Positions 683 through 34,945 of a stretch of DNA of 46,616 bases are shown here, in pieces. The notes beneath the pieces are model-generated. The model saw only the letters and a list, made by a program, of their open reading frames with translations. It was not told the origin of the DNA and did no database searches. The position numbers and the translations under genes are program-made. This DNA is from Octopus bimaculoides (Eukaryota): the NCBI RefSeq assembly GCF_001194135.2, contig NC_068992.1:45118002-45164617 (forward strand), given 5' to 3'. Every line of letters starts with the position of its first letter. The first letter of the stretch is position 1.

Positions 683-920
683 CCTCTTTGTTGTTTGTGA
701 CCTCTGAAATGCCATTCTGTAGAGCTGCACCATCATTACCATTCTGGAGACTGACACTATCGTTACTGTTCTGAAGAGTAATATCATTCACTGTTACACG
801 AGGGACATCACTTGCAGTACGCATGTGTTTGAAAAAGTTTTTCCTAAAACGTCCTTCAATGTTTTCACCATGCTTTGTTTTAGAATTTTCTTTGATATTC
901 AAAAAAGTGTCTTTTTTCCC
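683..920 (-). CDS. 238-nt low-complexity coding exon (GKKDTFLNIKENSK...SEVTNNKE), probable continuation of the C2/IPT gene
   Basis: ttgtttttgttaattcttag acceptor gives a phase-0 start matching the previous exon, then 79 open codons, then GAGG|gtttgt donor (weaker). Extra exons could be hidden in the N gaps at 4464-4963 and 6880-7196. Confidence 0.72.
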
Positions 921-1897
921 CTAAGAATTAACAAAAACAATAAGACAACAACACAAAAGTAAATTGCAATAATGGCATAAAAGACAACAGGAATATTAAC
1001 AAAATCAACGATCAACATGAGGAAAATTATCCAGTAAAAAATATCATAGAATTAATGTTTAATGAATTAAATGATAAAATTATTTCTTTGGTAATGACAA
1101 AATTATTATAACTCATGGGGTGTACAGCGAACAGCAAGAATCTAAACAGAAACATATCTATCCATTCTTAATACATTCTGGCACATTTGAAAGTGATTAT
1201 CCGATCACTCTTGTTTTCTGTCAAAGGAGAACACTTTAGACAATGTGTGTTCATAACTCATGAGATTCCCCACAGCAAAGGGACTTTGAGACACTATGAT
1301 ATTTCAGCCTTATTGTGTGTGTCTCCTCACTCAAAGTTACCCTGTCTGACTGATGAAGCTATCAAAAACACAAGCTCACGTTTATGGAAATCAGCAAGCA
1401 AATTAATTACTGTTGTGTGCAGAAAAATTGTTCCATTTGTAAATTCAGATTTTCTGTTGAAATATTTCAGTTTTTATTTCTTACAGAAAGAATCCTTGAT
1501 GAGTGGCAGAAATGGCAAAGCACCAGCTAAAATGCCATGTGGTGTTAGATTACATCACTTTATTTTGTGAGTTCAAATCACATTATAGTCCACTTTTCCT
1601 TTTATTACTCTGCGAAAAAAGAACCAGTTCAATATTGGGGCAGTTAAATTGACAATGATTTATTCCACAAAACACAAGCGTTTACCATATTATTTTCATG
1701 TTAGAAACAGTTATGTATCAGTTATTAGTGGATGTAGAATTAATGGAGCTGAACATTCGTGGGTGACAGAATAAATAGTCTCAGTCTAAATGCATGGCTG
1801 TTGGAAATTGACAAAATCAGTATCTATGAGTGTTTGGCTGAATTAAACTGTACAGCTGTTCTCCATCATTAGTTTGTGTCAATGTTAGAAATCAATA

Positions 1898-2265
1898 TCA
1901 TTGGGTATTATTGTAAACAGTGATCTGTATTGGATAAACAACATTTCTAAGATTGCCAAGAAGGCTGAGGGTGTCCCTGCATCACTCAGTAAAACCTTTG
2001 TCGGCTGGTCTCCAGCTGTCTATTTAAAACTGTATATGGCTATAGTACATCCACACTTAGAATCTGCATCACCAGTCTGGAAACCCTATCTTGCTCAGCA
2101 TATCAATCTCCTGTAAAGTCAGAAACTTGCAACAAAATGAATACCCGCCATCAGGCATCTACCATAATCTGAACATCTTACTTTTCTGGGCATGAAGACA
2201 TTGAGGCTCAGAAGTCTGACAACTGACTTAGTAGACACCTATAAGATTATTCACCATCTTTCCAA
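1898..2265 (+). mobile_element. Decayed CR1/L2-type LINE, reverse transcriptase C-terminal region
   Basis: LGIIVNSDL..ISKIAKKA...FVG..PAVYLKLYMAIVHPHLESASPVWKPYL...ATK*IPAIRHLPYSE.L..LGMKTL...DLVDTYKII follows the familiar CR1-clade post-RT consensus (LYKxLVRPHLEYxxxVWSP...RATKxIP...YEERL...DLIxxYKI), with stops and frameshifts. Confidence 0.8.
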
Positions 2266-2708
2266 CAACTTTGGGCATCTTCTTGAATTCCATATGACAA
2301 ACACTCTACCTAGTGACACAGTGGTGCATCTTTATCTCCTATTTAGTTTATTCTTATCTGAGGAACCAACAACGAACCACTGGATCAAGGATCAACTTAA
2401 ATAAATTACACTATGTATGTTATGTATATAAAGTTAAAATCTAAGGATCAAGGTGTAGGGAGTTAGTAAGTTTCAAGCAAGGTATAAGAACACAACTTTC
2501 AGGAACAATAGTGGTTCATTGACATAGAAGGTAGTAAATTTTTCCCATATCGAAGTTCAATAACTTGAAAAAATTTATTTTATAGCTAACGGTGAGCAGC
2601 TGGGGTTGTGTATGTGAATAATATACATATATAAACACACACACACACACACACACTTACTCTACTATATTTAACAATATATACACTCCTATATATTTAA
2701 TGATAGGC

Positions 2709-2864
2709 ATAGGCAGAGTTGTGTGGTTAAAAAGACTGGTTCCCAACAACATTGTTCTAGGTTCAGTCCCTCTACACAGTAACACCAACAAGTGTCTTCT
2801 ACTATTGACTAGGGCTGACCAAAACCATGCGAGTGAGTTTTGTAGACAGAAATTGAAAACAAAG

Positions 2865-2870
<6 letters not shown>
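2709..2870 (+). mobile_element. tRNA-derived SINE, family A (diverged head and body)
   Basis: gttgtgtggttaaaaag...ggttcagtccc...aagtgtcttctactat shared with the copies at 29080 and 32240; followed by (TG)n(GA)n. Confidence 0.7.
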
Positions 2871-2917
<47 letters not shown>

Positions 2918-2922
2918 TGTGA

Positions 2923-2971
<49 letters not shown>

Positions 2972-4463
2972 TGTGTTTATATAATGATAAAATCGATTCC
3001 AAAGTAATCCTTCAACTCACCAAACAGAACAATAATACATAAATGGAAAGAAAGAAAGAAAGAAAGAAGGTAAGACAATATGCCCCCTCCCATTAGTCGT
3101 TACCACCCACCATCATATTCATCCAATATAAACACTTTGGTATTATTATCTCAGCCATTTTATATAGCAATAAACCATTTGATGTGTTTTAAAATCATTA
3201 GTGCTTATATTATATTTCAAAATATATCTGTCACATTAATTTTATCCATCATCATCACCACCACCATTATCATTATTCAGTTGTCTGATTTTTGCTTTCA
3301 CTGCATTATCATGTGCATCTCTGTGCACCTATCTTGGCTATGTGCAATGTGTTGCTTTGATTTTTTTGATTTTTATAGCATTGAAAATATTATGTAATGT
3401 GTGCTGTGATGCCTTGTAGTATCTCCTATACATTGTGTGTATATAAGTCCAACTATACATGATGTAAGACATATATATGGTGTTTAATAGTGCTATTTCC
3501 TATATGTTGTGTGTGGATGTCTAAGACCTGTAGTACAGTGTATGATGTATGTGGCATTACCTCTTGTACACTGTGGGTACCTGTCCAAGTCCTGTGATAT
3601 TCTGTATGATATACGTGTGTACAGTACCTTGTGGTATTATTTCTTGTTATGTTGTGTTTCTAATGCAAGGTTCTAGGTTTGGTTATATATTTGCCTGTAT
3701 TTTTTTTAATCATTCCCAAGGAACATTTTATTACAGAATTTATTTTGTCTTCACCCCCCACATTCTAGCTATCTCCACAGGGCACGCAGAATGATTATTG
3801 CAGTGGATAAAATGCCTTGTGGTATTTAGTAATAGATCTTTAATTTCTAAGATAAAATCACATTGAGAGTAACTGTCTTTCAAAATTAAAAATCAAAAAT
3901 GCATGCAAGGGTAATAACTCTAACAAGATCAGATGATCAAAGCTTTAGAAATGAGAGCATGTGGGTGTGGTATTAAAACCAAAACCAACTGGTGACAGCA
4001 ACAGACACGGTTCCATAGTCATTGATAAGTGAACTCTTGAGACAAAGAGGACTAATTTTGCAATGATCTTCTATCTGACTCCAAAACTGATTGGCAAGAG
4101 TACATCAACACCTAGTAGAGAAACGCTCTGCAGGCCACAATTAATATTATACTAATAATCATTGATGCTCCTGGTGATGATAATAAATATCTAAGTTACA
4201 ATCTGGATGAGTTATGATTATCAGGTAAGAAAGCAATTAGGTAACATGTATTTTACAAACAGAAGCTCTGAGTGGAACAGTAAAGGTAGGCAAAACTTTG
4301 CTAAATTTGAAGATGTAGCATTTAAACTGCAGCAATAAAACTTTGTTTCTTTGTTAGAAACCAGCTCTTTTTTTCTAGGAGAATTGTATTAGATAAAAAA
4401 AAAAAATAAACACACTGATATACAAACAATAAATGTACAGACATACATATATATATATATATA

Positions 4464-4963
4464 NNNNNNNNNNNNNNNNNNNNNNNNNNNNNNNNNNNNN
4501 NNNNNNNNNNNNNNNNNNNNNNNNNNNNNNNNNNNNNNNNNNNNNNNNNNNNNNNNNNNNNNNNNNNNNNNNNNNNNNNNNNNNNNNNNNNNNNNNNNNN
4601 NNNNNNNNNNNNNNNNNNNNNNNNNNNNNNNNNNNNNNNNNNNNNNNNNNNNNNNNNNNNNNNNNNNNNNNNNNNNNNNNNNNNNNNNNNNNNNNNNNNN
4701 NNNNNNNNNNNNNNNNNNNNNNNNNNNNNNNNNNNNNNNNNNNNNNNNNNNNNNNNNNNNNNNNNNNNNNNNNNNNNNNNNNNNNNNNNNNNNNNNNNNN
4801 NNNNNNNNNNNNNNNNNNNNNNNNNNNNNNNNNNNNNNNNNNNNNNNNNNNNNNNNNNNNNNNNNNNNNNNNNNNNNNNNNNNNNNNNNNNNNNNNNNNN
4901 NNNNNNNNNNNNNNNNNNNNNNNNNNNNNNNNNNNNNNNNNNNNNNNNNNNNNNNNNNNNNNN
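4464..4963. other. Assembly gap; other gaps at 6880-7196, 11530-12377, 33018-33078, 36450-37216 and 38295-38614
   Basis: Runs of N, mostly bordered by (AT)n microsatellites. Confidence 1.
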
Positions 4964-5642
4964 ATATATATATATATATATATAATTTTGTTTTCAGGGT
5001 GATACTACTTGTAGTGATTAATTAATCGCTTGGGTATTGTAGTTCCTCTCGTCAACTCCATTCTAATTACTCATCTACATTCACTCTGCAACTGTAAATA
5101 CTTGGGTCTTCATCATAATCAAAACCCTTTGAGACACTGCTTATAGCATGGTCACACTCAGGTGACACAAACCAGTAAAAGAACCAAAGAATATATGAAC
5201 GATTAAATAAAGCAGGAATACAGAAATATATGTCAGGTGGTAAAATATCTGGAAGTGTCATGGCAAGCGATTGGTATAAAATTTGTTGTCATTTCATATA
5301 AATGCCAGAAAATATATATATTTTATCACAGTGCAAATGTAGGAAAGAAGTGAGTAAATATTTTCATAAGGTTTTACAAAATGTTTAACACCAAATCATT
5401 GAATTTTGGTCATAAGAGACTATATGCAATAAAGTTACACATATGTAAGTGTGCATATATGTATGTATGCAGATATACACTCATACATACATGTGTGTGT
5501 GTATATTTAAGTATTAATATAAGCCTCTGTGTGTATGTGTGTGAATGTGCATGTGTGCATGAATACCTGTGTATATAGATAATATATATGCATTAATATG
5601 TACACCTAAATACATTGATATATTATGAATATCTATCCATAT

Positions 5643-5713
<71 letters not shown>

Positions 5714-6520
5714 AAGAGAGAGAGAGAAATACCTTTTTTATGCAAGAAGCTGATTCTGTATTCCTCTGTTATCCATTGTGCATATAAACACAAAACTTTT
5801 GGCAAAGCCATCATATCTAATTATAAAGCCAAAATTGAATGCTGCCAATGCAAATATATAGAAATAAGCTTTACACTACCTTAACCATTCCCATTTCTGT
5901 TTTTAAAGTTATAAACCTGTGCAGTTCTTCTCTTGTGTGCATTATGGTTTATCACATAAAGATATTTTTCCTAACCTCACCATTATTCATTGGTAACAAA
6001 AGGTGAAGTTCCATCTTACTCCTTATTTTCCATTCAATCAATTACATTCCAAGATCAATTCCTGCTCAGACTTCATGCATTTCCTCCATCCACCAGTTTA
6101 TCAATTTTTCTGGAAGTCACTCCTTATGTGTTGTTTCTTAGAAACCAAAACTAGATGTGACAGTTGCTGACGGTGAGAATGATATGAATCTGTAACAATT
6201 ATTTAATATTTATTTACTGTGACTGCCCAAAACCCGTATCACATTTATACTGGAAAGTATATTTGTTGGTAATGTGCAAAACTATGATGCACCTCATGCT
6301 CACCACATCTCTTCCATCCTATCTTCATTTCCCAATCCTTCCCCATTTCTAATCTATTTTCTTTCCCACTGACTACCTTTTATCTAGAAATGCAGACTAA
6401 CAATGCTTTGCATCTCCCATCTCAAACATACAGTATGTAAAACTCTGCTGTCTTCTATTTTTTGAAATGTTGGTAACTCCACTCCCTATAACAATTTTAC
6501 AATGTTCTTTCAGTTGCATT

Positions 6521-6551
<31 letters not shown>

Positions 6552-7219
6552 CATGAATGTGTGTGTATTATTTTAAACTTAAACTTCGTTCAAATTGTAT
6601 TTAAAACAATGATAATTTAAAACAATGATAATTTAAAACAATGATAATTTATGTAAGATGTCTTTTGTATATAATATACATGTTATTATAATGGATGAAG
6701 GGATGATTATTGAATGGTTATTATTTTGATATTATGATATTTTTAATAATTTTTCTATCTTTATATAATAAGTATTTCATATTAATTCATTTGGTACTTA
6801 TTGTTGGTTGAGATATATATATATATATCTAATTATTGTTCTACTTACGATCTGACGAGTAGCTATATTTTTTAATAGANNNNNNNNNNNNNNNNNNNNN
6901 NNNNNNNNNNNNNNNNNNNNNNNNNNNNNNNNNNNNNNNNNNNNNNNNNNNNNNNNNNNNNNNNNNNNNNNNNNNNNNNNNNNNNNNNNNNNNNNNNNNN
7001 NNNNNNNNNNNNNNNNNNNNNNNNNNNNNNNNNNNNNNNNNNNNNNNNNNNNNNNNNNNNNNNNNNNNNNNNNNNNNNNNNNNNNNNNNNNNNNNNNNNN
7101 NNNNNNNNNNNNNNNNNNNNNNNNNNNNNNNNNNNNNNNNNNNNNNNNNNNNNNNNNNNNNNNNNNNNNNNNNNNNNNNNNNNNNNNNNNNNNNNNATAT
7201 ATATATATATATACATATA

Positions 7220-7383
7220 CCTTCTACACTCTTTGAGTGGTTGGCGTTAGGAAGGGCATCCAGCTGTAGAAACTCTGCCAAATTAGATTGGAGCCTGGTG
7301 TAGCCATCCAGTTGCACCAGTCCTCAGTCAAATCGTCCAACCCATGCTAGCATGGAAAGCAGACGTTAAACGATGATGATGAT
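7220..7383 (+). mobile_element. Retroposon 3' fragment with a (GAT)n tail (family C, RTE-like 3' end)
   Basis: ggcgttaggaagggcatccagctgtagaaac...cccatgctagcatggaaagcagacgttaaacgatgatgatgat; a related fragment lies at ~8090-8190. Confidence 0.6.
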
Positions 7384-9634
7384 ATATATACATGAATGTA
7401 TATATATAGTTATAATAATGAAGTTAAACCAAATATTTAAAAATCATTTAATACATACATTTCAGGTTTGCATAATACATAATAAGAAGTGCATCCATTA
7501 CGTAACACAAACTTCCACACTTACAGCATTTCAAAATATTTTCGGAATGATTTAGTGAGGAACGTTTATGTAAGAGATGTGTTTCCTATTGAACATTACT
7601 CAAACCTGACATTTCAAAATATCACTATTTAGTTGACTTCATTATTACAACTAATATGATTTGATGCCAGTACAGACTAGCCGACTTTGACTCCGCTTAA
7701 ACAGATACTCTAACAATGGTTTGGAGCAGCTTGTTATATCTCACACAAGTCAAAAATTCTAATACCGTGTGCTGCTTCTTAGTGTAACATGAAATTATAT
7801 ATATATAAGAGTTTGTAGGAGATACGCTTATTTGTAAATGCAACTTACAGTTTGCTTTTTTGCATGATAAACACAAGATGCAGTTTGAGTCATTTATTGC
7901 CTATGCATGTCGCAATATTGGCATCTTCTGTAGTGGATTTTCATAGTGCAATTCATTCTATCTACAATTTTTCAGGGGAAAACTTTATGGATAATGAAAT
8001 TTTACAGGAAGCTCAGAATTCATCAGTAGCATTATACACCTAATTGTAGATGAAAGAAATTATGTACTTCGTAACCTTGTCAGTGCTGGTGTCATGCAAA
8101 AAGCAGTGGTGTAGTTCCTGGTGTTGCGAGATCCTGTCAAACTGACCAACCCATACAATCTTGGAAAACAGACATTAAATGATGATGAGATAAAGGTAAT
8201 ATATATATCTATGTATGTATGTATGTATGTATGTATGTATATATATATAGTCTTGAATGGTACAACAATACACTATAATACAAACAATGGGCTATATACC
8301 TGTTGTAATTTAGTCACCCATTGCCAGTACTAGCATATAGGATATCCATTTAGTGGTCATCCCTTCTTATACACATGTAATACATTTTTTTCTGAATTTT
8401 CAGATTTTTTATATGCTAGGCCAGTCAGGTGGTACTAAATGTATGTATGTATGTATATATTTGTACATGTCAGTAAATTTACTTTTCTCTTCTAATAACA
8501 ACAGTTATTAGTAGATTATGAATGACAGATTCATTGTCTGTAGCTGATGAAGTATAATAACACAGAAACATGTATCCTGTTGTTGGATAAAAACATTCAC
8601 AACCTAGCTCAGTGTGTTTTCACACAATGTCTAAAAGAACTTCTCTTCTAACTCAATTACTGCAGCAAATGTCTTTCCACATTTGACTGCATATGACTGT
8701 ATTAAATATAAATGTACACAGCTTTGTTATAATCAACACTGCTTTGTGTGCCTCTAATTGACTATGTCATAGAAATACATAACTATGTCACATAACTATA
8801 TAACTATGTTGTATAAATATATACTAATGTTCTAACAGGATATAACTATGTCATATAAGTTCTTGACAATACTTTCAAATACTGAACTATTTTCTTTAGC
8901 ACACTGTAGAATATACAAAGTTATTTTATCTTAAGAATGTTACATACATTCCAGCAAGTATACAATGACAAATTTGTTATTAATGGAGCTACTATAGCTA
9001 TAACAATGTGAAGAGGAGACTACTACCTCCTCTATGCAATGACAGGTTAGAGGGTTGTGTGAAAAGGGGACAATTACTTAAAGCAATTACATAACAATAG
9101 TTGTGAAGAATTGATGAAAGCATCTCAGAAGGAATGATTCACAACTCCTACTTGATCATTTTAAGCCAAATGCTCAAATTCCCGGCATGTGATATGCTAC
9201 TGTTTGAATAGCTGTCAGATATTGAACATAGAAGTTCTGGGGAAGTTACTCAAAGTTGCTCTCAAAAGATTGGTAGCATTGCTATAGATTGGTATTCATT
9301 TCTATTATAATTCAGTGGAGTCTACTTACTGTTATAGTCAGTGGAGTTAAGTAGCAGCTCTATGGACCAATGGTCCTATAAAATTTATGTTCAACTCAAT
9401 TTGTAAATAAAGACAAGTTAGTACATTCATGGTTGCTGGAATCAGAGGTAAGGTAACATCAAAAATTTGAGATCCCTGGCAGGCAAGATCATAATGGTAG
9501 ATTACACAATGAATGATAGGGAGTTGATTAATTAAGAGAAGCGAGAGAGAATACTGAGACTAATACCACAATAGTAAACGATTGTTGTCTATGGGGCAGA
9601 TATACAATGGTAAATATAAGATTGTTCTACTTAC

Positions 9635-10763
9635 TTTGCCATGATTTTCTCCAAGATCTTTGGAATTTTTCCTTGGGGTATTTTGAGCAGGAAACTTTCT
9701 CCGATCAAGTGAAGAAAATTTATTAACAGAAGCAGGATCAGGTGGGATTAATCTTTTATTAGAGCTTAGAGTTTGCAGTTGACTATCTGATGATTTGCGA
9801 GATTCAGTTGATGCTTTGGGGGAATTTGGCGTCGATGAGCTTTCAAAAGGGTTAAGAGAATCATTCTGACCATGTAGTGTTTTAGGAGAATTTGGTGTAG
9901 AAATTGTTATTTGGGTTGGTGGTGTGACTAAGGCTAAAGTACTATGAGAGAGGGCTTTGTTTAAATTTGAAGGTGGTGTGGATTCTGGAGGTTTCGGTGC
10001 AGGTTTTTTATTCCGAGCAGCAACTAAAGTGAAGCCTCCAGTCAAAACAGTTTTACCACCGAATGAAGTCTCAATGACAACATCACCTTGGCCAGTAGGA
10101 CCTGGCAATGTCTCACAGTATATCTGACCTGAAGATTCATATTCTAATGTAGAAAGAATATCAACATCGCAAATACGTAAGGTAACAATATCAGATTTCT
10201 TTAAACCAAGGTTTTCACCTACAATAGTAATACGTGTGCCACCAGCAGCTGAACCAGTATTTGGAGTTATGTAGGATATTTCTGGTTCAACCCCAGCACA
10301 ACTCAAATTAAAAGTACTTCGGGTTTTTAATTTTGATGGTGCACCCTCTGATTCTTCATCATCTGAGTTGTCAGCCTTCGATAAACTAAAAATATCATGA
10401 AAAGATCGAGAGATTCTTTTATTCAGATTTGAAAGGTGACTAGTTGACTTTTGTTCTTTCTTAAAGAAATTACCAGAGAAACCAGGTGATCGTTTAAAAG
10501 TCAAAAAGGGATTAGTTGTAAGCCAACTATTTCTTCTTGGCTTAGATTTCTCATCAACTTCTCCATCTCGATATTTAGAAACATAACACTGGTATATTAA
10601 ACTTCCTTTTGGTTTGGAATTCTTCTTGTGAGGCTGCAAGGCTGTACAAATAACTCTTCCCTTGGCCCCACGAAGAGAGCCTGTAGGAACCAATATTTGA
10701 CCCAAAATATCATCTTTTTCTGTGACATTGAAGAATAAAGCATCCGAGGAATTATTGATGGAA
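9635..10763 (-). CDS. 1129-nt coding exon: C2 C-terminal strands, NPF motif, Sec5/EXOC2-like IPT/TIG domain (~10022-10288), Ser/Pro-rich tail with a second NPF
   Basis: Lies within ORF 9560-10840. Acceptor ttctctttcag at 10763 (phase 2, matching the upstream exon) and donor GGCAAA|gtaagt at 9635 (phase 0). DDILGQILVP...KGSLIYQCYV completes the C2 domain. PEISYITPNTGSAAGGTRITIVGENLG...ICDVD...IYCET...GDVVIETSFGG is a TIG fold resembling the Sec5 N-terminus. Confidence 0.93.
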
Positions 10764-11035
10764 CTGAAAGAGAAATTTGGAAATTGAGTTAAGCAGTTAC
10801 AATGCCTCAACCAACCAACCACATCAATCCAACCAGTCAATCAATCAAATCAGTCCAACTAATCACATGAGTTCAACCAATCAACCAATCACATCAGTTA
10901 GTCACTTATGTAGAGAACTTGTTTCAGTGTCCTCTTTGTGCTTAAAAAAATATAGCAATGTTGAAGTTTAACTCTAAAAATATGCGGTTACATATGACCT
11001 GAGATGCCATTATTTTGTTTGGGTTTTATAGAGTA

Positions 11036-13035
11036 CTAGCAGTATAACCCGACGTTGTCCGGGTGTGACTTATTACGCCATCTACAATAAGTCTTGCTAG
11101 GTGAAAATCAATTAAAAAAGAAAGCCTTACAATGAAAAAACCCTTATGATGTAAATATGTTCATAATTCAAAAGATGAAATTAATAGGGGAAGTCTGAAG
11201 GCTGTTTTGTATAACATTATTAAGTGTACGTAAATTTCATCCGTCTAATTGGCTATACAAATGCTTGTGCAAAACAACTTTTTGCGCTGCCTTGATTACA
11301 CATAGCAGGGTAATTCCTTTTCGCAGGAGGTAGGACGGCAATTTCTGATGAAGCAATTGCTGGCGATTTGTTGCTACACAGTTCTGACAGAATTCTATCA
11401 GATTGGGCAGTAGATGATGATGCACCGTTTTGCATTATGTTCAAAGTAACTTCTGGAATGTGGTGAATTGCTGCAGTCTGTTGCTGTCTTTTTAAACCGG
11501 TTGCTTTCTTTCCCCAGCAAGCTCTCTTGNNNNNNNNNNNNNNNNNNNNNNNNNNNNNNNNNNNNNNNNNNNNNNNNNNNNNNNNNNNNNNNNNNNNNNN
11601 NNNNNNNNNNNNNNNNNNNNNNNNNNNNNNNNNNNNNNNNNNNNNNNNNNNNNNNNNNNNNNNNNNNNNNNNNNNNNNNNNNNNNNNNNNNNNNNNNNNN
11701 NNNNNNNNNNNNNNNNNNNNNNNNNNNNNNNNNNNNNNNNNNNNNNNNNNNNNNNNNNNNNNNNNNNNNNNNNNNNNNNNNNNNNNNNNNNNNNNNNNNN
11801 NNNNNNNNNNNNNNNNNNNNNNNNNNNNNNNNNNNNNNNNNNNNNNNNNNNNNNNNNNNNNNNNNNNNNNNNNNNNNNNNNNNNNNNNNNNNNNNNNNNN
11901 NNNNNNNNNNNNNNNNNNNNNNNNNNNNNNNNNNNNNNNNNNNNNNNNNNNNNNNNNNNNNNNNNNNNNNNNNNNNNNNNNNNNNNNNNNNNNNNNNNNN
12001 NNNNNNNNNNNNNNNNNNNNNNNNNNNNNNNNNNNNNNNNNNNNNNNNNNNNNNNNNNNNNNNNNNNNNNNNNNNNNNNNNNNNNNNNNNNNNNNNNNNN
12101 NNNNNNNNNNNNNNNNNNNNNNNNNNNNNNNNNNNNNNNNNNNNNNNNNNNNNNNNNNNNNNNNNNNNNNNNNNNNNNNNNNNNNNNNNNNNNNNNNNNN
12201 NNNNNNNNNNNNNNNNNNNNNNNNNNNNNNNNNNNNNNNNNNNNNNNNNNNNNNNNNNNNNNNNNNNNNNNNNNNNNNNNNNNNNNNNNNNNNNNNNNNN
12301 NNNNNNNNNNNNNNNNNNNNNNNNNNNNNNNNNNNNNNNNNNNNNNNNNNNNNNNNNNNNNNNNNNNNNNNNNNNNNATTTGAGAAAGATGTCTCGCTGG
12401 TAAATGACGGTGTTAGAAATGGAAAGTAAACTTATAATTCCCGCCAATTAGAATGAGGTCATTGGTAACCATAGGTACATATATATGTGTGTATTTACGT
12501 ATGATTGGCAGTGTGTCTGTTTATTTGACTCTCACTCTCCTTCATTTCTTTGTCTTTTTTCTTGGATCATTCGTAAACGTTCATAAGAGAAAGTAGCAAT
12601 TGAAACGATGTGTAAGAGGAATAGAAATAGTTAATTTTAGAGGGGCAAAGTAATTTTGTATGTACTTTTAGTATCTGTCATTACAATATTGAAATGTGAT
12701 TTGATACTGAAATAGCTTTCTTTTTCTCCTTCCTTTATTTTTGTATTTGTTGTTGGATTTTCCTTAAAGGCTCATAAGAGAAAGTAGGAGTTGAAAGGAT
12801 TTGTATTAGAAAGAGGAAATTAGATTTTATTAGGGAGAAAATGTTTACTTGTGTAGTTTTAAGGATTTTATTCGCTATTAGGAATTTTTTGGAGTGAAAA
12901 AATGACGCAGTGACCTAACTTATTGTATTTAGAATATTAATTGCGATTGTTTAATCGAAGAAATTTGGAATTGTGTAAATGTATGAATTTTAAACATATA
13001 CACACACAGAGAAAATCTGCCTTTTATAGTATAGA
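11036..13035 (-). mobile_element. Non-autonomous Helitron (~2 kb, contains an 848-nt N gap) in the intron upstream of the large exon
   Basis: Minus-strand 5' end A|TCTATACTATAAAAG at 13035. 3' end has a GC-rich hairpin (plus-strand cccgacgttgtccggg, 11048-11063) 8 nt before CTAG|T at 11036. Inserted between A and T with no TSD, as is canonical for Helitrons. Confidence 0.75.
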
Positions 13036-14546
13036 TAGTCTTGCTTATGTAATATGTTGAGTTGAAACACTTTGATGAGCTGAAATTATCCAAGCAATTG
13101 GTAGACAGAATTTCCTTCTATAGGCATTAATCCTTTCATTTCTATATTCCTAAGCAAAATACACCCCTTAATGTGTTTCAATTAAATTTTAAAATAATTA
13201 TGAATTTACACTGGTTTCAAGACACAACCCTTTTACTTATCAACACAATAATGTGATTTAGGAACACAATTTAACAAAAGGTTCATAACCAAATCTGCTT
13301 CATAATTTTTATCTCAAAGCAAATCTAATTACAGATAAATTCAACAAAATATAAAATTTTTAAAATTTTATTTAAACATCAGTGTAGACAGTGAATTATT
13401 AGCTAATATTCATTGAGTATACAACAAAATTTTAATAGAAAAGAATTGTGCAAATTACTGGATTATCTATCAGCTGAATTTAATGCACTTAGATAGGTGT
13501 ACCATAAAGGTAAAACATGAACAAAATACTGGAATTTGCTTTTGAAGTAAATCAGGAAATGAAATACATGCCATCAACTAAATTAAATAAACTTAAATGT
13601 ACATAAATACACAGAAACACATATATTAATGATTCACAATCCAAATTAATCAAACTTTGTCCTGCATCTTACAGGTAAACTAAAATTGCAGGTAAATAAA
13701 AACAAGGTAAATTTTTTTTTAATGTTTAGAAGTAAAATTTATACAAACACACACACACACAATATTCCTGAAAACCTTCTTCCATGTGGGAAACCCCGGT
13801 TTACATTCTGTATAATGACTTATTTCCACAATAATCACTTCAAAGGAAAAAGTAAAAAAAAAAAAAATAATCTAATGGCTTTGTTTCCTTAGAAAGACTG
13901 CAGCTAGGTCTACTATCTTCCTAAAAATAGCTAAGAATAATAGTTTTTAAATTCTTGCTATATTCAAGTGCAAATTCATTTCTTCATCACTATTAGAACT
14001 GTTGTCAGAATCATTTCACATTCAGAAAAAGAAATATCCAATTCATAAAAACACACTGGTTTTTATGTTTGCCATATTTTTTCCTAGATTTTTCTGTCTC
14101 CATTTGAAAATACCTTAAATTCAAACTCACTGCTTGACAACATGAAACTGGTATCCATTTTCCATCTGGAGCGAAACAATTCAGAAATTCGAAATGGCAA
14201 AAAAAATGGTAAAAAATGTATCCAAAGTTTCACAGCACTCGATATCATATACAATAATGTCTGACAGTGTAACTCAGATGTTTTGTATAGTGAAATTATG
14301 TGTTTTCACAAATGTACTAACAAAGTATACATTGAAATTCTCATTAAAATAGGAATAGGTAATTTCAGGCAGTTAAGGACAGTTTTGTAACAAAAGGATT
14401 AATATCTAAAACCAGATTTATCTATGATGCATTCAAAACATATTCAGACCTCTCTTTTACCATTCTTAAGATATTCTTGTCAGAATATGCGTCAATTCTC
14501 CTAAAAACCAAAGAGAGGAATTGTCAAGCTAGACTGTACAACTTAC

Positions 14547-14652
14547 AGAACTGATTCTTCATTCCAAACAGGATTACCCCTAGGATCTTTCACAACTGAT
14601 GTCCGATATTTCTTGTTTCCAAATCCAAATATCACTGAAAATTTATGGCGTC
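14547..14652 (-). CDS. 106-nt coding exon of the C2 domain: (G)RHKFSVIFGFGNKKYRTSVVKDPRGNPVWNEESV(L)
   Basis: ttttctttgaag acceptor and TTCT|gtaagt donor, phase 1 to 2. 'KKYRTSVVK..GNPVWNEE' matches the C2 consensus (kyrT.vvk...nPvWnEef). Confidence 0.92.
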
Positions 14653-15484
14653 CTTCAAAGAAAATAATGTTTTTAAAATTATATTTTAGATATTACTTCA
14701 TTGAGCAGTTGTAATTTATATATATATATATATGTACAGAAGATGATATAAGAATGCTGTACTGAAGTGGGGCTGCCCAACCAATACAGGCATGAAAATA
14801 AGACAAAGTTGATGACAACAATGACGATAATAACAATAGATATACAAATAAAAGGAAAAGGGACTCAACACACGTTGTACAGCATCAATAACAAACATTT
14901 TAAGGACATTCATTTGTCCAAGCATAAATTAGCCAAGCAGTTGCAGGGATTTGGGAAACAGTGCCAGTTTTCTTTATTTCACCCATTTCTTTACATCCCC
15001 AGCACACTAACTCCTTGCCCTTATTTCTTCCTAAACCATCTTACGGATAAAAATATTTCTGATAACATCTTTTACCTTTTATCTTTTACTTGTTTCAGTC
15101 ATTGATGATTCAGTTCATAATTTCATCTTACACATGTGACATTCCCATAGCTTACATATAGGACATTACCATATCATACATTTGTGAATATGTGATATTA
15201 CTACATCTTACGTGTTATTATCACACTTTATACATGTGATATAATCACATCACGCATAGTCTCATAAAATTGGATGTTTTGAGAAACAAAACTCATTACA
15301 ATAACAAAATGCTAAAATATATTTAACTGGTGGTTCCTAGCCCAACATTTGATTAAAATATGGATCAAAGACTTTTCATTTATGAATAGAAGCTCCTTTA
15401 ACCATTTCACCATTTCTCAATAAATTTTAACACAAAAAGACAGAACAGAAACATTAAAATAAAAGTAGCTTGGATCAATCATAC

Positions 15485-15520
15485 CTGGTTTCTTCCCTTG
15501 TAATCCTTTTGCATTGTGAA
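15485..15520 (-). CDS. 36-nt coding exon of the C2 domain: (V)HNAKGLQGKKP(G)
   Basis: tttttccag acceptor and CCAG|gtatga donor, phase 1 to 1. Gives VTVIVHNAKGL, the typical C2 'V.V..A.gL' motif. Too short to appear in the ORF track. Confidence 0.9.
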
Positions 15521-15849
15521 CTGGAAAAACAGGTCGAGAATAAATTATGTCATATTATTGCATTTTACAGACACACACACACGTATAAAGATACACACAA
15601 ACACACACATCATTTCATTATGTGATACAGGAATATCTTTGGTTTTGGCTTGACATCCATTTATCAATGTCAGCATGGATGAGATGGTTTATTTGTTACA
15701 AGTGTCTTTACAGTTGGATGTTGTCCCTTCCTAATGTGAACTGTAAACTACTAGTCAACTGTGAAATAGAAGAGAAACCTGATTCTTGCTCATTTACAGA
15801 AATACTATCAGCAGAATCAAGTGCTTTGTTCAAAGAAACAACACTATAA

Positions 15850-16160
15850 GAGTCATAGTAATCTCTTAACTAATGACTATCATAGCACCACAGTAATCTC
15901 TCAACTAATGACTGTCATAGCATCATAGTACTATCTCAAATAATGACTGTAAGAGCATTATAGCAATACCTCAAATTACGGCTGCTATAATATCATAGTA
16001 AGATCTCAACTGATGACTATCAAAATGCTAAAGTAAGGTCTGAAGTAATGACTTTCATTGTGATGTAATAATAAATGAACTAATGGCTGCTGTAGTAATG
16101 CAGTAAGGACGTAACTAATGACTATTCAAATGTAACATTAGAGCCAAAAGTAATGACTCA
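15850..16160. repeat. Diverged minisatellite, ~40-bp unit (catagtaatctcttaactaatgactatcatag...)
   Basis: About 7-8 decaying copies. Confidence 0.75.
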
Positions 16161-16439
16161 CACAGTTATCATATCTGTTACCATTATTAATTAATTTGTT
16201 GGTATCAGACAGCATGAAGAGTGGAACAAGGGACTAAGTGCATTGTAGTATTTAGTTGTGATACATTGCATCATCAGTTCAAATCTTGACATGGTTCAAA
16301 ATCATCCAGCATTGATAAGATATATACCAGACAAATACTGGTGGTTGATTAAATCCAGTATACCCTCCCTCAATCTGCGTCCTTCCTACCATGGTCCTTC
16401 ATGCACCACTGACCCTTGGAATTTTCTGACATTTCACAC

Positions 16440-16680
16440 TCCATGACCCTTTACATTCCAAGGTCCTTCACACTCTATAACCTTTAGGGTACCACTGGTC
16501 CAAGAAACCTGTCTGGCTCTTTGCATACTATGGCACTTCAAGTAAAACTGTCTTTTGGAAGCCTATAGGCCCTTCAAAAATTATAGCCTACAGGCCCTTC
16601 AAACATTATAGCCTACTGATCCTTAGGACCCTCTGGTCCTTCATACTCACACATACTGTGGCCCTTAGAGCTTAATAGGG
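16440..16680. repeat. Diverged minisatellite, ~22-bp unit (ggcccttcaaacattatagcct)
   Basis: Clear adjacent copies at 16560-16625, degenerate on both flanks. Confidence 0.6.
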
Positions 16681-18158
16681 AAATTTTGATGATTTCATGA
16701 CATATTACATAGGAATTATGTTTGTATGATGAATAACAACCATTTACTTGGGTGTTGTTGTTTGGCCCCATATCAATTCTGATCCCACTGACCTGTGATC
16801 AAAAACACTCTAACTATCCCAACTCATTTTCTAACAATGTACCAAGACCTATTTTACCCAATATGTAATTTTTATCATTAAGATGGCATAGGTTTGAGTG
16901 TAATTTAATAGTTATTTCTAGGTATAAAGAAACCACAATGTGGCAGAGTGCTCAATGACTTGTCCCTTTTCTTGTCAATGACTTGTCCCTCAACAGAAGG
17001 GAGATCAAGCATTCAGTGTGTATAGTTAGTGACCAAATGCCAAGGAGATGGTCACTGTATTTTAAGAAAGAATTCATGCCAAGTTAGTCTATTCCAGGTA
17101 ACATTTCTTGGTGACCTCTGACCTATTTCTGACCAATGACAATACAGAATAGACTGTTCTGCTTGGATAGTGATGTGATCTCATGTACTATGACCAAGTA
17201 ATCCATTTCCTTATTCATTAAACAATTGTGACTTTACACTAAAATATTTCACTAATTTTAAAATTCACTTGAAATACTTCAGCTTCAAATAAAATTTTAT
17301 ATTTTGAACCACAAATTTATAATCTTTATTTAATTTCCTCAGAAGTAGGAAAGGAAAAGGAAGCAGCACACAATTTGGAATTGACTTTTCAAGTGAATAC
17401 CATATGATAAGGAACTCTAGAAAAATGCTGACCTTGAAGCAATGTTGGAATGTATTAATTACAAAATTGCAAACCTTTCAGATTATATCAGAGAAACTCA
17501 GCTGATAGGAATTAAGTCTAAAGACAAAATGTTCAAAGAATGGTAACAGAATTAGGCAATATCTTCTCAATATCATCATTTTAAGATTGCTATATTTAAA
17601 AAACAAAAATTCTGAAATGTTTAATTTGGTAATAGAACAGGGCCTTATTTGAAGCCTAAAATCCAAAAACAAGAATATAATTAGTAAAAAACGAATATGT
17701 AAGTTGGTGAACTTTTTTAAGATTTTAAAATAAAACCAAAAGCAAGAAAGATTACACTAGTGGCATGAAAGATGAAAAGCTTTGAGTAATCAAATCATTA
17801 TAATTAAGAAAAAAGAAGAGTTAACAGGGATACAGACATTAATGAGAGATTACAAAATAAATAACTAGTAATATAAAACCAGTTACCAGAGCTGTGCTGT
17901 CTCTGACAAAGTTTTTAATAACTCGAAATCTGTTGCAGCAGATTTAGTTGACCATGAGGGTAGTGGGGTGTAAAGAAGCAAGAATAATGTCTTTATTCAA
18001 TAAATTCCCTAAGAGAAGTTACAGCAGTCTCCTTCTCCAAGAAGTTGGATATCAACATCATCTAAAGTTTGAACTAAAACACACACTAACTGAGAGTGGT
18101 GGTCATGAAAATGTCCAACAAAAGTTTATAGTTGCTTCACTGCATGTGTGTGTGTGTA

Positions 18159-18207
<49 letters not shown>

Positions 18208-18397
18208 GTTTGTCCGCCCACCATCGCTTGACAACTGATGTTGGTGTGTTTATGTCCCTGTAACTTAGTGGTTTAGCACAAGAGACCGAAAGAATAAGTA
18301 CTAGGCTTACAAAGAATAAGTCCTGGGTTCGATTTGTTTGACTAAAGGCGGTGCTCTAGCATGGCCACAGTCAAATGACTGAAGCAAATGAAAGAAT
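18208..18397 (+). mobile_element. SINE family A, 3' part
   Basis: tttgtccgcccaccatcgcttgacaac...ggcggtgctctagcatggccacagtcaaatgactgaa shared with 29260-29430 and 24352-24560 (minus). Confidence 0.75.
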
Positions 18398-18968
18398 ATA
18401 TACATGTACAAATGTACATTTGTATGTATGTACATGTGAAATATGTAGGAGATATGGTTGTGATGATAAAGACATGTGATATGTGATGTAACAGTATGTG
18501 AGAGGTTTAAGGGTATTGTGAAAGGCCTGGTTGGAGGACCAACCTTCCAAGTTCTTTTACAGATAAGGCAACAGAAGATAAATGCATGTGATGATTTCAT
18601 AAAGTGCAGCAGACCAATCCAACCCATACCTAAAGAGAAAGTAAGCATAAAAACACTGATATTGTTGATAAAGCAGAAAATATATTTTTTTCTGCTATAT
18701 AAAATTAAAAGATTCATCAACTCTAGAACTTTTTTCTAGATTTTCTCACCATCTGAACAAACATTGCATACATATGTACATCTATGTGTGCGCATGCACG
18801 CCTGTGTGCGCATGCACGCCTGTGTGCATGCATTTATGCATATATATGAATGTGTATGTGTGTATGTACACACACACACACACAGATAAGCATACCCCAA
18901 AACAGACCAAATGATATAAATGAGAAATCTTAGATATATCAAAGTACAGAAATCTAGTTAATACATAC

Positions 18969-19180
18969 CTATAACAGTCACTTGGTCAGGAATCGGCTGC
19001 TCACTCTCATCCATTAGTAGATTTGTTAAAACTAGTACATCTACGGCAATTAGTATAACTAATACTGTTGATAAGTTCAATGCTGTTTCTATGTCTACCA
19101 CAGTTGGTACAATTGCTAAGTTGATTTGATGCAGCTCCAATATACCCTACGACATTCTTCATTTTCATCTTGGCATCTTT
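18969..19180 (-). CDS. First coding exon of the C2/IPT gene: 5'UTR plus CDS 19014-18969 (MDESEQPIPDQVTVI + 1 nt)
   Basis: Strong acceptor (ttcttttttgttttcag) before 19180 and donor ATAG|gtatgt at 18969. ATG at 19014. The peptide resembles the first C2 beta strand (PxxVxVxV) and joins in phase 1 to the next exon. Confidence 0.85.
19007..19168 (-). other. 53-codon upstream ORF overlapping the main ATG, with two CxxC motifs
   Basis: MKMKNVVGYIGAASNQLSNCTNCGRHRNSIELINSISYTNCRRCTSFNKSTNG*. Its TGA lies inside ATGGATGAG of the main start. The frame is open from the exon acceptor. Confidence 0.6.
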
Positions 19181-19429: not shown

Positions 19430-19665
19430 ATAATAATAATAATAATAATAATGATAATCCTTTCTACTAAAGGCACAAGGTTTGAAATTTTGGGGGAGGG
19501 GACTAGTAAAATTACATTGACCCCCCAGTCTTTCACTGGTACTTAATTTATTAAGGACGAAAGGTAAAGTCAAACTTGGTAGAATTCTCAGAACATAACG
19601 CAGGACAAAATGCTGCTAAACATTTTGCCTGGTGTGCAAATGATTCTGCCAGCTTGCTGCCCTAA
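19430..19665 (-). mobile_element. tRNA-derived SINE, family B
   Basis: Reverse complement of the ggcagcaagctggcagaatc...gagttcaaatt head seen at 40105-40770; flanked by (AAT)n. Confidence 0.7.
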
Positions 19666-19914
19666 TAATAATAATGATAATAATAAGTTATGATGATATT
19701 AAGTGTGATAATTAGCTAGGCCAAGCAAGAGCTTCCTTTTATTTCTAATAACAATTAAAATGGTCAATGTGCCATAAATTACTAACACCAATGCATTGTT
19801 GTCAATGAAACTACTTGTTAGTATGTGAATGCTATATAATTTCCCAACCTCGGACAAATAACAGTAAAGGTGACCCTAGTTGCAATTTCAACAAGGATAA
19901 AAGAATTGCACAGT

Positions 19915-20250: not shown

Positions 20251-20445
20251 TGCATCTAGGTCCCAAATGGAAAAACAAAATCTTAGTTTAGCATAACATA
20301 AATTGCACCAAATAATGGTAAAATCCATCCTAATCAAGAGGTCTGTCTGTTGGGGAAGACATGGTCTGACATAGAATGAAAAAAGAATTTAAATAAAGGC
20401 AATTCTATTGTGAAAATTGCCCAGCAACAACGGGCTGCTCAGCAA

Positions 20446-20477
<32 letters not shown>

Positions 20478-21183
20478 GTACATATATGTATTTATATACA
20501 CATGCACACATAACAACTATATCAACAATATACTACTGCAAAGAGTTTCAAGCAGAACTGAACCAATTCTTCTCAACATCAACTTATGTCCTTTTAAAAG
20601 AAGTATATAAACTGCAAAGAAATATACAAATCTGTAGACACACACGTGTGTATGCATGTGTGTGTGTGTGTATGTATATATATATATATATATATATATA
20701 ACACAACTAATTGATACAAAGACTTCAATTTAATTAAGAAAGAATGGAGAAAGACGAGAAAGAAATGTAGATTATTTCAAGATGGCATTATTTCATCATC
20801 AAGTTGAATATTTCAAGAATCTTTGACATAATGAGGAAATCTGAACAAGCATGAAAATCTCAAAATGTTTATCTTCGTCATTATTGTTGTTAATGTTGTT
20901 ATTATTATCATTATAATTACTATCAGTAGTAGTAGTAGTAGTAGTAGTAATAGTAGTAAGTTGTGAAGAATCAAAACAAAAGCTAAGTACTTGGAAGTTG
21001 ACATAGGTTGTTATTGATTTTGTGTGTGAGTTTGAATGAATGCTTGTGTGTGTGAGTGTGTGTGTATAAATGTCTGTATGTATGTATGTGTATGCATACA
21101 TACATGTGCATGTATATATAGATACCCATACAAATACACCCATACCCACAAATATATATTATATAAAGATATGCACATGTACG

Positions 21184-21215
<32 letters not shown>

Positions 21216-21298
21216 CAAATAATAAATGAGTATATGCATATATACGTACAGGTATGTGCATACCTACGTCTACATGTATATATAGGTGCATATCTGGG

Positions 21299-21960
21299 TA
21301 CACAAATTAAACCTGTGCCATGGAGGAATGTAGTGGCAGACAAAAAACAAGACAGGAAAACAAACGGAAAAGGCTTTGTGGCCAGACGTGGAAAATTATG
21401 TGTATATGAACGCTGTGAGGCACGAACTTGAAAGTGGGGACGAAGCAAGTTCGCGTGTTTGCTCGGCGATAGCCAAGGAAGAAAAGGATTAGTGACCGGA
21501 AGCATGTGACCATGCAGGGTTAAGGGAGAGAGAGAGAGAGAGAGTGGTAGAGGGAGAAACACAGGGAGTAAGTAGAAGGATGGGTGAGCAACGAGAGAAA
21601 GAGAGGAATATAGTAGTAACAGAAGGAAGTACAAGGGGGGAAAGAGAGAGATATAGTAGTAACAGAAGGAAGAACGAGAGGGGTAAAGAGAGATACGTAG
21701 TAGTAACAGAGGAAGAATGAGAGGAGGAAAAGTGATCGAGAAAGAGATAGAGCCGCGTCAGAAAATATAAAGTTGAAATAACTACTTACAACAGTGATGA
21801 CGCTGGCGTTCGGTCATGTAAAAATACTTACATACATACACATATGCACGTGCATGTACATAATTTTCCACGTCTGGCCACAAAGCCTTTTCCGTTTGTT
21901 TTCCTGTCTTGTTTTTTGTCTGCCACTACATTCCTCCATGGCACAGGTTTAATTTGTGTA
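21299..21960. repeat. Perfect 103-bp inverted repeat (21299-21401 / 21858-21960) with a 456-bp spacer
   Basis: Base-by-base reverse-complement identity of TACACAAATTAAACC...GGAAAATTATGT. The spacer is purine-rich on the plus strand, with three copies of atagtagtaacagaaggaag. Confidence 0.95.
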
Positions 21961-33339: not shown

Positions 33340-34469
33340 ATTGATATGAATAACTAAATCTATCAATAGTTTCCAACTCATATTAATAAAAATAACCAGA
33401 TCTATCAGCTATCATAAGTCTTTAATCGACAGTCATATGAACAGCTACACCTATCATCAGTCTTAAATTCATACTAATATGACTAGCCAAATTTATCACC
33501 ATTAAAAGAGTTTATTATCCATACTAATATGATTAGCCTGATCTATCAATTCATTATTTTTGCTGTAGAAAACAAAAATTGATTCAATTATGAATGTATT
33601 GGATCTTTTTTTTATCTCCTCATATTAATTTTTTTAATAATATTTAATAATGGACACCTTTATGCTTTGGTTCCACCTTCTTTAGTATATCAACATTTTT
33701 GTTTTAAACTGGTTAATTAGCTACAGCTAATTAACAAAAAGTCTGTTTTGTTTTGTTTTTGTTTGGAAACAAAAGAAAGCCTGGAAACCGTTTCTATAAT
33801 ACATAGAATCTTCATTTACATTTATTTAAGAATTTAGTTTTAAATCATGAAATACATGAGGAATGGTCACAGTTGGTACAGAAGATAGGACTAATAATTA
33901 ATGGTAAGATGTTTGAAACCTGTAGTTTTGTGGTTCACAAGTCTATTTTGGCTAAGCATTACCTTTCAAATTTACTGAATAAAATAAAATAAATACAGTA
34001 TTGACTTAGTAGAGAGAAAGTGCATTCTGAATTCAACTATGGATTCATGTACTGAGTGGATGTTTGAGATAAAAGTTAGGAGGCAAACAGTTTTCCGATG
34101 AAATTCTACCATTGCTGTTTTTGAATAGTACTCTGGTAAATACAGAAGTGAAACCGACTAGTGAATATTTTTACCAGTTCATAGTAACCAAGCTGATTCT
34201 AAAATTTTCCTTGTGTCTTACACTCTTTTCAATAGTCATTGACTTTGTCATTTATCAGAGCCGTGTCCTTTTTGTTTGTTTGTGTGCATGTGTATATGCA
34301 TATGTATGTATGTGTGTATGCATGTATGTGTGTGCATATATATGTGTGTGTGTGTGTGTGTGTTTACGTTTGCATGTATGTATGTATGTATGTATGTGTT
34401 CTGCATATTCATGCATTTGTGTGTTCGTGTTTATGTGTTTGTATGTGTGTGTCTGTTTGTAGACTTTAA

Positions 34470-34945
34470 CTTGTCCATAAATAGTACAGCATCATTCCTA
34501 TCCACAGCTAACCCTAGTAGGACAGTTAGATCCAGCTGCAACTACCGATCTGGTGCTGAATGCCTGCTGCAAGCCCATTGCAGAAGATTTAGCATTGTGT
34601 ACCAATGCACTGTCCACAACACACAGCACAATTCTACAAGCCATTACAACGGATCTATAATTAACTTTAAGCAGAGATATTCTGCACATCTGAACTCATT
34701 TAGATATGAAGAGCATAACAAATCCACATCCCTAGCCAACCACAGGTACTATCTGATAAGTAAGAAAATGCCATATAGGATAACCTGGTCCTTAGTAGAT
34801 TTTGATGTCCCATACCAAGGCTAGCACTCTAAATGTTGACTCTGGCTTAAAGAAGCCCTTCAAATATTAATTCACAATTCACCACAGCTACTTAATAGAC
34901 AGCATGAAGCATTCTTTTCACACAAACATAAGTACTATTGTATCT
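34470..34945 (+). mobile_element. Decayed Penelope-like element, GIY-YIG endonuclease region
   Basis: SCNYRSGAECLLQAHC..FSIVYQCTV...SHYNGSIINFKQRYSAHLNSFRYEEHNKSTSLANH..YLISKKMPYRITWSLV...PY matches the PLE pattern CNC...CPL...C....IVY.A.V....Y.G......FK.RY..H..SF........T.LS..IW.L.......I.W. The continuation reads C*LWLKEALQIL...LNR. Confidence 0.8.

Follow-up and report, generated by a model that had tools for sequence, protein, structure and literature searches.

LOC106870949 is a gene of Octopus bimaculoides that lies partly on the minus strand of a 46,616-nt stretch of contig NC_068992.1 (positions 45,118,002 to 45,164,617; the window in what follows). Its 576-amino-acid (aa) product, which carries the NCBI label "uncharacterized protein", is probably a Rab11 effector built on the design of the class I Rab11-FIPs, with a Sec5-type IPT domain inserted in its disordered middle. 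The AlphaFold2 (AF2) model contains three confident modules (a C2 domain, an IPT domain, and a C-terminal helix) connected by disorder, and profile comparisons together with this model establish the homology of all three to known modules. From these modules we infer dimeric binding of Rab11, binding of lipid, recruitment of EH-domain proteins, and, where it occurs, binding of a GTPase by the IPT domain.

The defining features of class I FIPs are a C2 domain at the N-terminus that binds phospholipids and, at the C-terminus, a Rab-binding domain (RBD) located in a dimerising coiled coil (PMC9282008). The octopus protein resembles the members of this class (FIP2, FIP5/Rip11, FIP1C/RCP, and Drosophila Rip11) in having a C2 domain at the extreme N-terminus followed by a short basic motif of the xPF-KLK type, a long disordered middle that, as in FIP2, contains NPF (Asn-Pro-Phe) motifs, and a C-terminal coiled coil ending in YID...P..L. 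It is unlike them in the globular IPT domain (aa 221–312) between C2 and RBD, which is present in up to three copies in other lineages, and in the divergence of its RBD, where Cys-Pro replaces Thr/Ser-Pro and His-His replaces Glu-Glu. Class II FIPs (FIP3/arfophilin, FIP4, and Drosophila Nuf) share the same type of RBD, and the FIP3 RBDs are matched by the profile of the family's tail described below at an expect value (E) of 1e-4. Class II proteins lack a C2 domain and carry EF-hands and an Arf-binding region, whereas the octopus family has a C2 domain and no EF-hand. We know of no described FIP with an IPT domain between C2 and RBD, and searches of the literature that combined Rab11-FIP with IPT/TIG or with molluscs turned up no account of the architecture.

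The C-Terminal Rab-Binding Domain

The last two of the seven coding exons, exons 6 and 7, encode a coiled coil that closes with YIEKLLAKVLHHCPEAL, a divergent RBD of the Rab11-FIP type. In the AF2 model, aa 522–566 form one long helix, the end of which reads Y549-I550-E551...P562..L565; the equivalent segment of FIP2 reads ELEDYIDNLLVRVMEETPSILRVP (PDB 3TSO). The pattern Y[IVM][DE]x[LIV][LV]x[KR][VI][ML]xxxPxxL is found in the tails of all 26 of the 26 family members examined. When a 35-column profile of these 26 tails was compared with the whole PDB, the nine best matches were without exception RBDs of Rab11-FIP1, FIP2, or FIP3 (E 2.5e-5 to 3.8e-4), and the alignment spans YID..LL..VME..P..L. 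A 73-column C-terminal profile had been tried and was replaced by its last 35 columns; matches to the longer profile were dominated by generic coiled coils, with FIPs appearing only at E 0.02–0.09. Mutation of the Ile of the YID motif (I481E in FIP2, and equivalents) abolishes binding of Rab11 (PMC9282008), and this critical residue of FIP2 corresponds to Ile550 of the octopus protein.

When hhalign was run with the full-length family against human FIP2, it gave two collinear matches. One covers the C2 domain and the post-C2 motif (E 6.8e-10, probability 96.6%; NPFLTFKR in octopus, SPFAKLKDK in FIP2), and the other covers the RBD (FIP2 449–498; E 2.1e-5, probability 77%). The Pfam RBD-FIP model (PF09457, cutoff 23.3 bits) scores 33.0 bits in Ptychodera, 29.7 in Oscarella, 24.3 in sequence P0108, and 23.3 in Amoebidium, all of them relatives of the same architecture, and one member from Plectus is named "FIP-RBD domain-containing protein" in UniRef. 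The first-pass annotation of the window, made by a model from the letters alone, had connected the gene with Rab11-FIPs on the strength of its type of C2 domain. The connection stands, by way of the FIP-type RBD in exons outside the window, and the type of C2 domain does not carry it.

In the annotated isoform X1 of the chiton Liolophura sinensis (P0210), an unrelated hydrophobic tail takes the place of the coiled coil and RBD; this is either splicing that removes Rab11 binding or an artefact of prediction.

The C2 Domain and the Disordered Linkers

The domains and motifs encoded in the window, in order along the protein, are given here with their window coordinates and strand.

10580..10763 (-): C-terminal half of the C2 domain (aa 63–124; the whole C2, aa 11–124, is encoded by exons 1–4); Pfam C2; AF2 predicted local distance difference test (pLDDT) >90 for aa 11–124
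10484..10513 (-): post-C2 motif NPFLTFKRSP (aa 147–156), including the first NPF (10505–10513); aligns with SPFAKLKDKMK of class I FIPs; the hhalign alignment extends through it
10376..10435 (-): conserved linker motif LSNLNKRISRSFHDIFSLSK (aa 173–192); N177, K178, S181, and S183 invariant in 26 mollusc sequences
10016..10291 (-): Sec5-type IPT/TIG domain (aa 221–312); Pfam TIG; Sec5 1hk6/1uad at E 1e-10; mollusc profile 69 bits to Sec5; Foldseek match to 1uad_C; AF2 pLDDT >90
9845..9853 (-): second NPF (aa 367–369), context SLNPFESSS; acidic residue next, compare KNPFEESS in FIP2; kept in O. vulgaris, lost in Argonauta

Pfam places the C2 domain at aa 11–92 (E 7e-9), the same far N-terminal position that it has in class I FIPs, and hhalign aligns it with the C2 domain of human FIP2 at a probability of 96.6–96.7%. 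In loop 1, Lys, Arg, and His occupy the positions at which Ca2+-binding C2 domains have Asp, as judged against synaptotagmin-1, and loop 3 is shortened. The C2 domain might bind acidic lipids independently of Ca2+, a suggestion from these loop residues to which we give little weight.

The position of the post-C2 motif reads xxF.RL[RK]...SP in other molluscs. The linker motif between C2 and IPT (aa 173–192) reads LSNFNKKxSRSIHDIFSF in molluscs, and we recognised no known counterpart of it. Upstream of the coiled coil, a basic motif (aa 462–477, window positions 807–854) corresponds to GRF[KR]KNFxKHxR[RT]AS[ED]S in other molluscs (also GRFKKNFxKHxRRASES), and the RRxS core of this motif resembles a phosphorylation site of the AGC/PKA type.

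The two NPF motifs of the octopus protein (TNPF at 10516–10505 and LNPF at 9856–9845) compare with 0.11 expected, and the second is an NPFE. The 41 family members together have 24 NPFs, where composition alone predicts 1.9, and the motifs are carried by 15 of the 41: cephalopods, scallops, heterodont bivalves, a crinoid, a nematomorph, and some unplaced sequences. Most are located C-terminal to the IPT domain and are followed by an acidic residue (NPFE or NPFD). EHD EH domains favour NPFs with acidic flanks, those of FIP2 included (PMC13282721).

The Sec5-Type IPT Domain

Pfam recognises one TIG domain in the octopus protein (aa 223–297, E 3e-11). When the octopus sequence alone is compared with the PDB, the best match is the Ral-binding domain of rat Sec5 (E 1e-10) and the second is plexin-A1 (8.5e-9). 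A profile of non-mollusc IPT domains from the family scores 89 bits against Sec5, which is a single domain, and 44 bits against the best single plexin-A1 domain; the higher total for plexin is the sum of three domains. The corresponding mollusc profile scores 69 bits against Sec5 and 60 bits against the best plexin-A1 chain. In a Foldseek search with the AF2 model, the best match to the IPT domain is 1uad_C, from the Sec5–RalA complex (template modelling (TM) score 0.87, root-mean-square deviation 1.8 Å, 34% identity over 91 columns), and no plexin is found in the top 50. The IPT domain of Sec5/EXOC2 (1UAD, 1HK6) is the best single-domain match in both sequence and fold, with ~34–36% identity over 89–91 residues. 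The IPT domains of plexin and Met belong to the same Pfam TIG family and give the second-best sequence matches, with per-domain scores roughly half of the Sec5 value; these domains are extracellular and arranged in tandem arrays, unlike the octopus domain. The likeness to Sec5 noticed at first pass is confirmed by these scores and by the fold, and a grouping with plexin/Met or with transcription-factor TIG domains is not borne out by the scores or by Foldseek. A search with the IPT domain alone in a set of 5.8 billion proteins gave no matches among the 4 candidates scored.

The domain is N-terminal in Sec5 and internal in the octopus protein, from which the remainder of Sec5 is missing, and there is a two-residue insertion after Gly18 relative to Sec5. 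Differences are also found at the surface that contacts Ral. Thr11 of Sec5 forms a hydrogen bond with Tyr36 of RalA, and T11A weakens affinity (PMC12407918, citing Fukai 2003); Arg27 pairs with Glu38 of RalA, and Sec5 R27E binds only the charge-swapped RalA E38R (PMC3382198). In our alignment Thr11 corresponds to Ser226, a conservative change, Gly12 to Tyr227, and Arg27 to Val244; the Thr11/Arg27 pair is not kept.

The Arg27 equivalent is kept in 13 of 19 non-mollusc IPT domains, and with it an edge strand like that of Sec5, [EK]V[TS]GISP. These domains come from sponges, Nematostella, an annelid, a nemertean, a hemichordate, a nematomorph, and several unplaced sequences, and what the non-mollusc members have in common with Sec5 is the VTGISP edge strand, Thr11, and Arg27. 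Each of two unicellular holozoans has two IPT domains, of which the second, and only the second, keeps the Arg27 equivalent. In molluscs it is kept in none of 11: the position is V or I in cephalopods, scallop, and chiton, and E or D in gastropods and other bivalves, Glu being the same change as R27E. Judged from these residues, canonical Ral binding is plausible for the family at large; for the octopus protein, where the first-pass annotation had proposed it, it is doubtful because Arg27 is replaced by Val244 (V, I, E, or D in 11 of 11 molluscs).

Distribution of the Family

Searching 1.84 billion representative proteins with a family profile yielded 162 matches below 1e-30, many of them giant multi-IPT proteins matched through the IPT domain alone. 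Thirty family-like matches were looked up by name and their domains checked. The arrangement C2-IPT(x1–3)-RBD is found in every mollusc class sampled, in annelids (Owenia, and Paralvinella with three IPTs), a nemertean (Tubulanus), a nematomorph (Gordionus), a nematode (Plectus), a crinoid (Anneissia), a hemichordate (Ptychodera), Nematostella, and three sponge classes (Oscarella, Ephydatia, Sycon). Pigoraptor vietnamica and Amoebidium parasiticum, both unicellular holozoans, have a C2 domain and two IPTs apiece, with tails YVDRLVVRIIEIDPEAL and YIDRLLVRLINADPSLL. Lineages differ in their number of IPT domains, from one to three (P0059, 957 aa; P0067 of Paralvinella, 809 aa, with three; P0061; P0080 of Pigoraptor; P0152 of Amoebidium). 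Vertebrates and insects are absent from the named matches, the names covering part of the 150 listed.

On this comparison of sequences the C2-IPT-RBD family is ancient and widespread, and because it spreads across Metazoa and two unicellular holozoans it is not the lineage-specific adaptor that had first been supposed. It is not a well-annotated family, however widespread: its members are unnamed or are labelled "exocyst complex component 2", though they lack the entire Sec5 core. That label, or "EXOC2-like", is attached to the members from O. vulgaris, Plakobranchus, Mya, Owenia, Paralvinella, and Sycon.

Gene Model

Within the window the gene has five minus-strand coding exons, running from 19014 to 683, with AG...GT at all internal boundaries and with phases in agreement. 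Spliced together, they translate into 518 aa free of stops, 100% identical to residues 1–518 of LOC106870949 (P0001). Five phase-consistent exons with C2, TNPF, IPT, and LNPF had been read from the letters at first pass, and the AG/GT sites, Pfam, and this identity bear them out. The exons and the assembly gaps between them are as follows.

18969..19014 (-): coding exon 1; ATG at 19014–19012; aa 1–15 plus 1 nt; GT donor at 18968–18967; first C2 strand from aa 11
15485..15520 (-): coding exon 2, 36 nt; VHNAKGLQGKKPG; C2 strand 1 and basic loop 1; AG/GT; collinear in orthologues
14547..14652 (-): coding exon 3, 106 nt; RHKFSVIFGFGNKKYRTSVVKDPRGNPVWNEESV(L); core of the C2 domain
11530..12377 (.): assembly gap, inside intron 3
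9635..10763 (-): coding exon 4, 1129 nt, aa 63–439; C2 end, post-C2 motif, linker, IPT, Ser/Pro-rich tail, and second NPF; single open frame; 3' end in phase 0
4464..7196 (.): stretch of intron 4 with two assembly gaps (4464–4963 and 6880–7196), both intronic
683..920 (-): coding exon 5, 238 nt, aa 440–518; includes the basic motif GRFRKNFFKHMRTASD (807–854); GT donor at 682–681; the gene runs on past the window

The gene is thus incomplete in the window, which holds exons 1–5 of 7, and coding sequence for the C-terminal 58 residues of LOC106870949 is found nowhere in it. Exon 6 (aa 519–537) and exon 7 (aa 538–576 plus the stop) were mapped on the chromosome record CM046612.1 (GCA_001194135.2), which is reversed relative to the window; they lie ~5 and ~12 kb past window position 1, beyond a gap of 1193 N, and supply the missing residues, DWSEDAKFAELERLQKENKALRQENADMKAYIEKLLAKVLHHCPEALAADNELTLSQC. 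Window position 1 (L001 29014) directly adjoins this gap (L001 29015–30207). The introns before exons 6 and 7 hold two more gaps, of 1193 and 1213 N.

All three gaps in the window are intronic, and the reading phase is unbroken across introns 3 and 4. The orthologues from O. vulgaris and Argonauta hians are collinear with the octopus protein at the exon 3/4 and 4/5 junctions, with zero added residues, and the AF2 model has a complete C2 domain across the exon 3/4 junction at pLDDT >90. Squid (decapodiform) orthologues (P0005, P0006) are longer by 20–25 residues (ETISPKKSPEKSYKAHLKEMKQ...) at precisely the position of the octopus exon 4/5 junction. The insertion may be a lineage-specific exon; no counterpart is found in the readable part of octopus intron 4, and strictly speaking a cassette exon could still be hidden in the gaps of that intron. 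P0004 was considered as transcript support for the exon 4/5 junction and rejected, as it is a genomic contig running into the intron.

Evaluation of Alternative Explanations

It is very improbable that the architecture is an artefact of the gene model in which two adjacent genes have been joined across assembly gaps. The part of the gene in the window contains three gaps, another two precede its last exons, and the link between exon 5 and exons 6–7 depends on the annotated model. However, the C2 end, the linker, the IPT domain, and the second NPF share one uninterrupted exon of 1129 nt, and the combination of C2 and IPT is therefore not the product of a gene fusion artefact. The squid orthologues (570–572 aa) are complete on contigs of 2.0–2.9 kb, which are presumably transcripts because they are too short for introns of such size, and the full-length C2-IPT-RBD design is found again in more than 15 lineages of phylum rank, two unicellular holozoans included. 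That the octopus protein is a paralogue or fragment of exocyst Sec5/EXOC2, as the database labels on several relatives would have it, is hardly credible, and this reading is already refuted by domain content. The likeness to Sec5 is limited to the ~90-aa IPT domain, which is internal and not N-terminal, in a protein of 576 aa both flanks of which match FIP2. Pfam gives C2, TIG, and a weak RBD-FIP only, with no Sec5 core, and no helical bundle or CATCHR region is seen in the AF2 model.

Several results weigh against the assignment of the protein to the class I FIP design. Taken alone, the octopus protein scores 12.3 bits (E 0.15) against Pfam RBD-FIP, below the gathering score of 23.3, and since the single sequence is subthreshold, the assignment of its RBD depends on family profiles. 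A search of the 5.8-billion-protein set with a fused C2+RBD profile brought up pieces of family members along with plant CAR/AGD C2 proteins, and no canonical FIPs among the 1521 candidates scored, too small a sample to tell if molluscs have an ordinary class I FIP as well. By sequence profile the C2 domain is no nearer to that of FIP2 than to several unrelated C2 domains: the family profile scores 52–53 bits against human FIP2 and 59–67 bits against C2 domains of Munc13-1 (C2B), myoferlin, E-Syt2, and Syt7. These scores do not support the earlier description of the domain as a Rab11-FIP-type C2 (52 bits for FIP2), and what carries the FIP assignment is the RBD together with the post-C2 motif and the general layout of the protein. 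Among the 41 members, those from gastropods, sponges, Nematostella, and both unicellular holozoans have no NPF motif, and so NPFs are not a core feature of the family; the first NPF of the octopus protein may be a chance Ser-to-Asn variant of the conserved post-C2 xPF. Val244 at the Arg27 position counts against canonical binding of Ral by the octopus protein.

If the protein is indeed a class I FIP with an inserted IPT domain, its RBD would, by analogy with FIP2, form a parallel coiled-coil dimer that clamps two molecules of Rab11-GTP on recycling vesicles. The N-terminal C2 domain, with basic residues in place of Asp, could attach to acidic phospholipids of its target membrane with no need for calcium, in the manner of class I FIP C2 domains, and the acidic-flanked NPF that follows the IPT domain may recruit EH domains of the EHD/RME-1 type. 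Most non-mollusc members could bind Rab11 and Ral at once, because their IPT domain keeps the Thr/Ser and Arg of Sec5. The mollusc domain, without the Arg, might bind Ral weakly or differently, or might bind another partner.

How the IPT domain acts in octopus is the point on which the remaining alternatives differ. It could work exactly as in Sec5, binding Ral-GTP through its edge beta-strand and so coupling membrane lipid, EHD proteins, and Ral/exocyst signalling. The domain is Sec5-like in sequence and fold, Ser226 is a conservative substitute for Thr11, and non-mollusc members keep Thr/Ser, Arg, and the VTGISP strand. Against this, Arg27 is replaced by Val244, the position has become Glu (equal to R27E) in gastropods and many bivalves, Arg is seen in 0 of 11 molluscs, and Gly12 of the strand is also replaced (Tyr227). 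We regard exact Sec5-like action in octopus as distinctly unlikely. Somewhat unlikely, in our estimate, is that the IPT domain does not bind a GTPase here at all and is a spacer, a dimerisation surface, or a docking site for a different partner, in which case the insert would be mere decoration on a class I FIP. Lineages have anything from one to three IPT domains, and the Ral-contact Arg is gone in molluscs while the domain is still conserved at a mean column identity of 62%; because the Arg was lost and the domain remained highly conserved, some other constraint must be at work on the mollusc IPT. On the other hand, in most other phyla the edge strand of Sec5 type and the Arg are strongly conserved, which speaks for an ancestral interface of the GTPase type, and no alternative partner is indicated by the present data.

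Origin and Significance of the Family

A broader scenario can be put forward as speculation that we think unlikely to hold as a whole. Under it, C2-IPT-RBD proteins would be ancient holozoan Rab11 effectors that bind Rab11 through the RBD and Ral through the IPT domain together, and so would connect recycling vesicles directly with Ral signalling, in parallel to or in competition with the exocyst; the class I FIPs of vertebrates and flies, without an IPT domain, would be derived and simplified; and in molluscs the Ral interface would have been either adjusted or given up. The family may be the orthologue of Rip11/FIP1/2/5, with canonical FIPs as derivatives by loss of the IPT, or it may be an old paralogue.

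To our knowledge, Rab11 and Ral are usually drawn as connected through Sec15 and Sec5 alone. A FIP-type Rab11-binding tail and a C2 domain joined to the type of domain with which Sec5 binds Ral would make these proteins candidates for a direct Rab11–Ral coincidence adaptor. That no vertebrate or insect member turned up in these searches would explain why the family has been overlooked. Tractable species that have it include Nematostella, oysters, and Aplysia, and its recognition corrects the recurring misannotation as "exocyst complex component 2". The Arg27 contact, kept in most phyla and lost in molluscs, offers a natural experiment.

Other Features of the Window

Beyond exon 1, an open reading frame scan of 19015–46616 gave no convincing coding sequence for a second gene, and an Rfam scan of the window found nothing. 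The window has a G+C content of 33%. Dense microsatellites of the (TA)n, (CA)n, and (TATG)n types occur throughout (for example at 2800–3000, 5500–5800, 18140–18360, 20400–21300, 34240–34500, 43100–43470, and 46330–46616) and give rise to long spurious open frames with many Y, I, C, V, and H residues. A dispersed repeat of ~270 bp is present at 19440–19700, 40308–40444 (opposite strand), and 45141–45462, at 70–84% identity, one copy lying just upstream of exon 1. A (TAT/ATA)n-like run within the repeat reads as poly-Tyr when translated, and the repeat is probably an octopus element resembling a short interspersed nuclear element (SINE).

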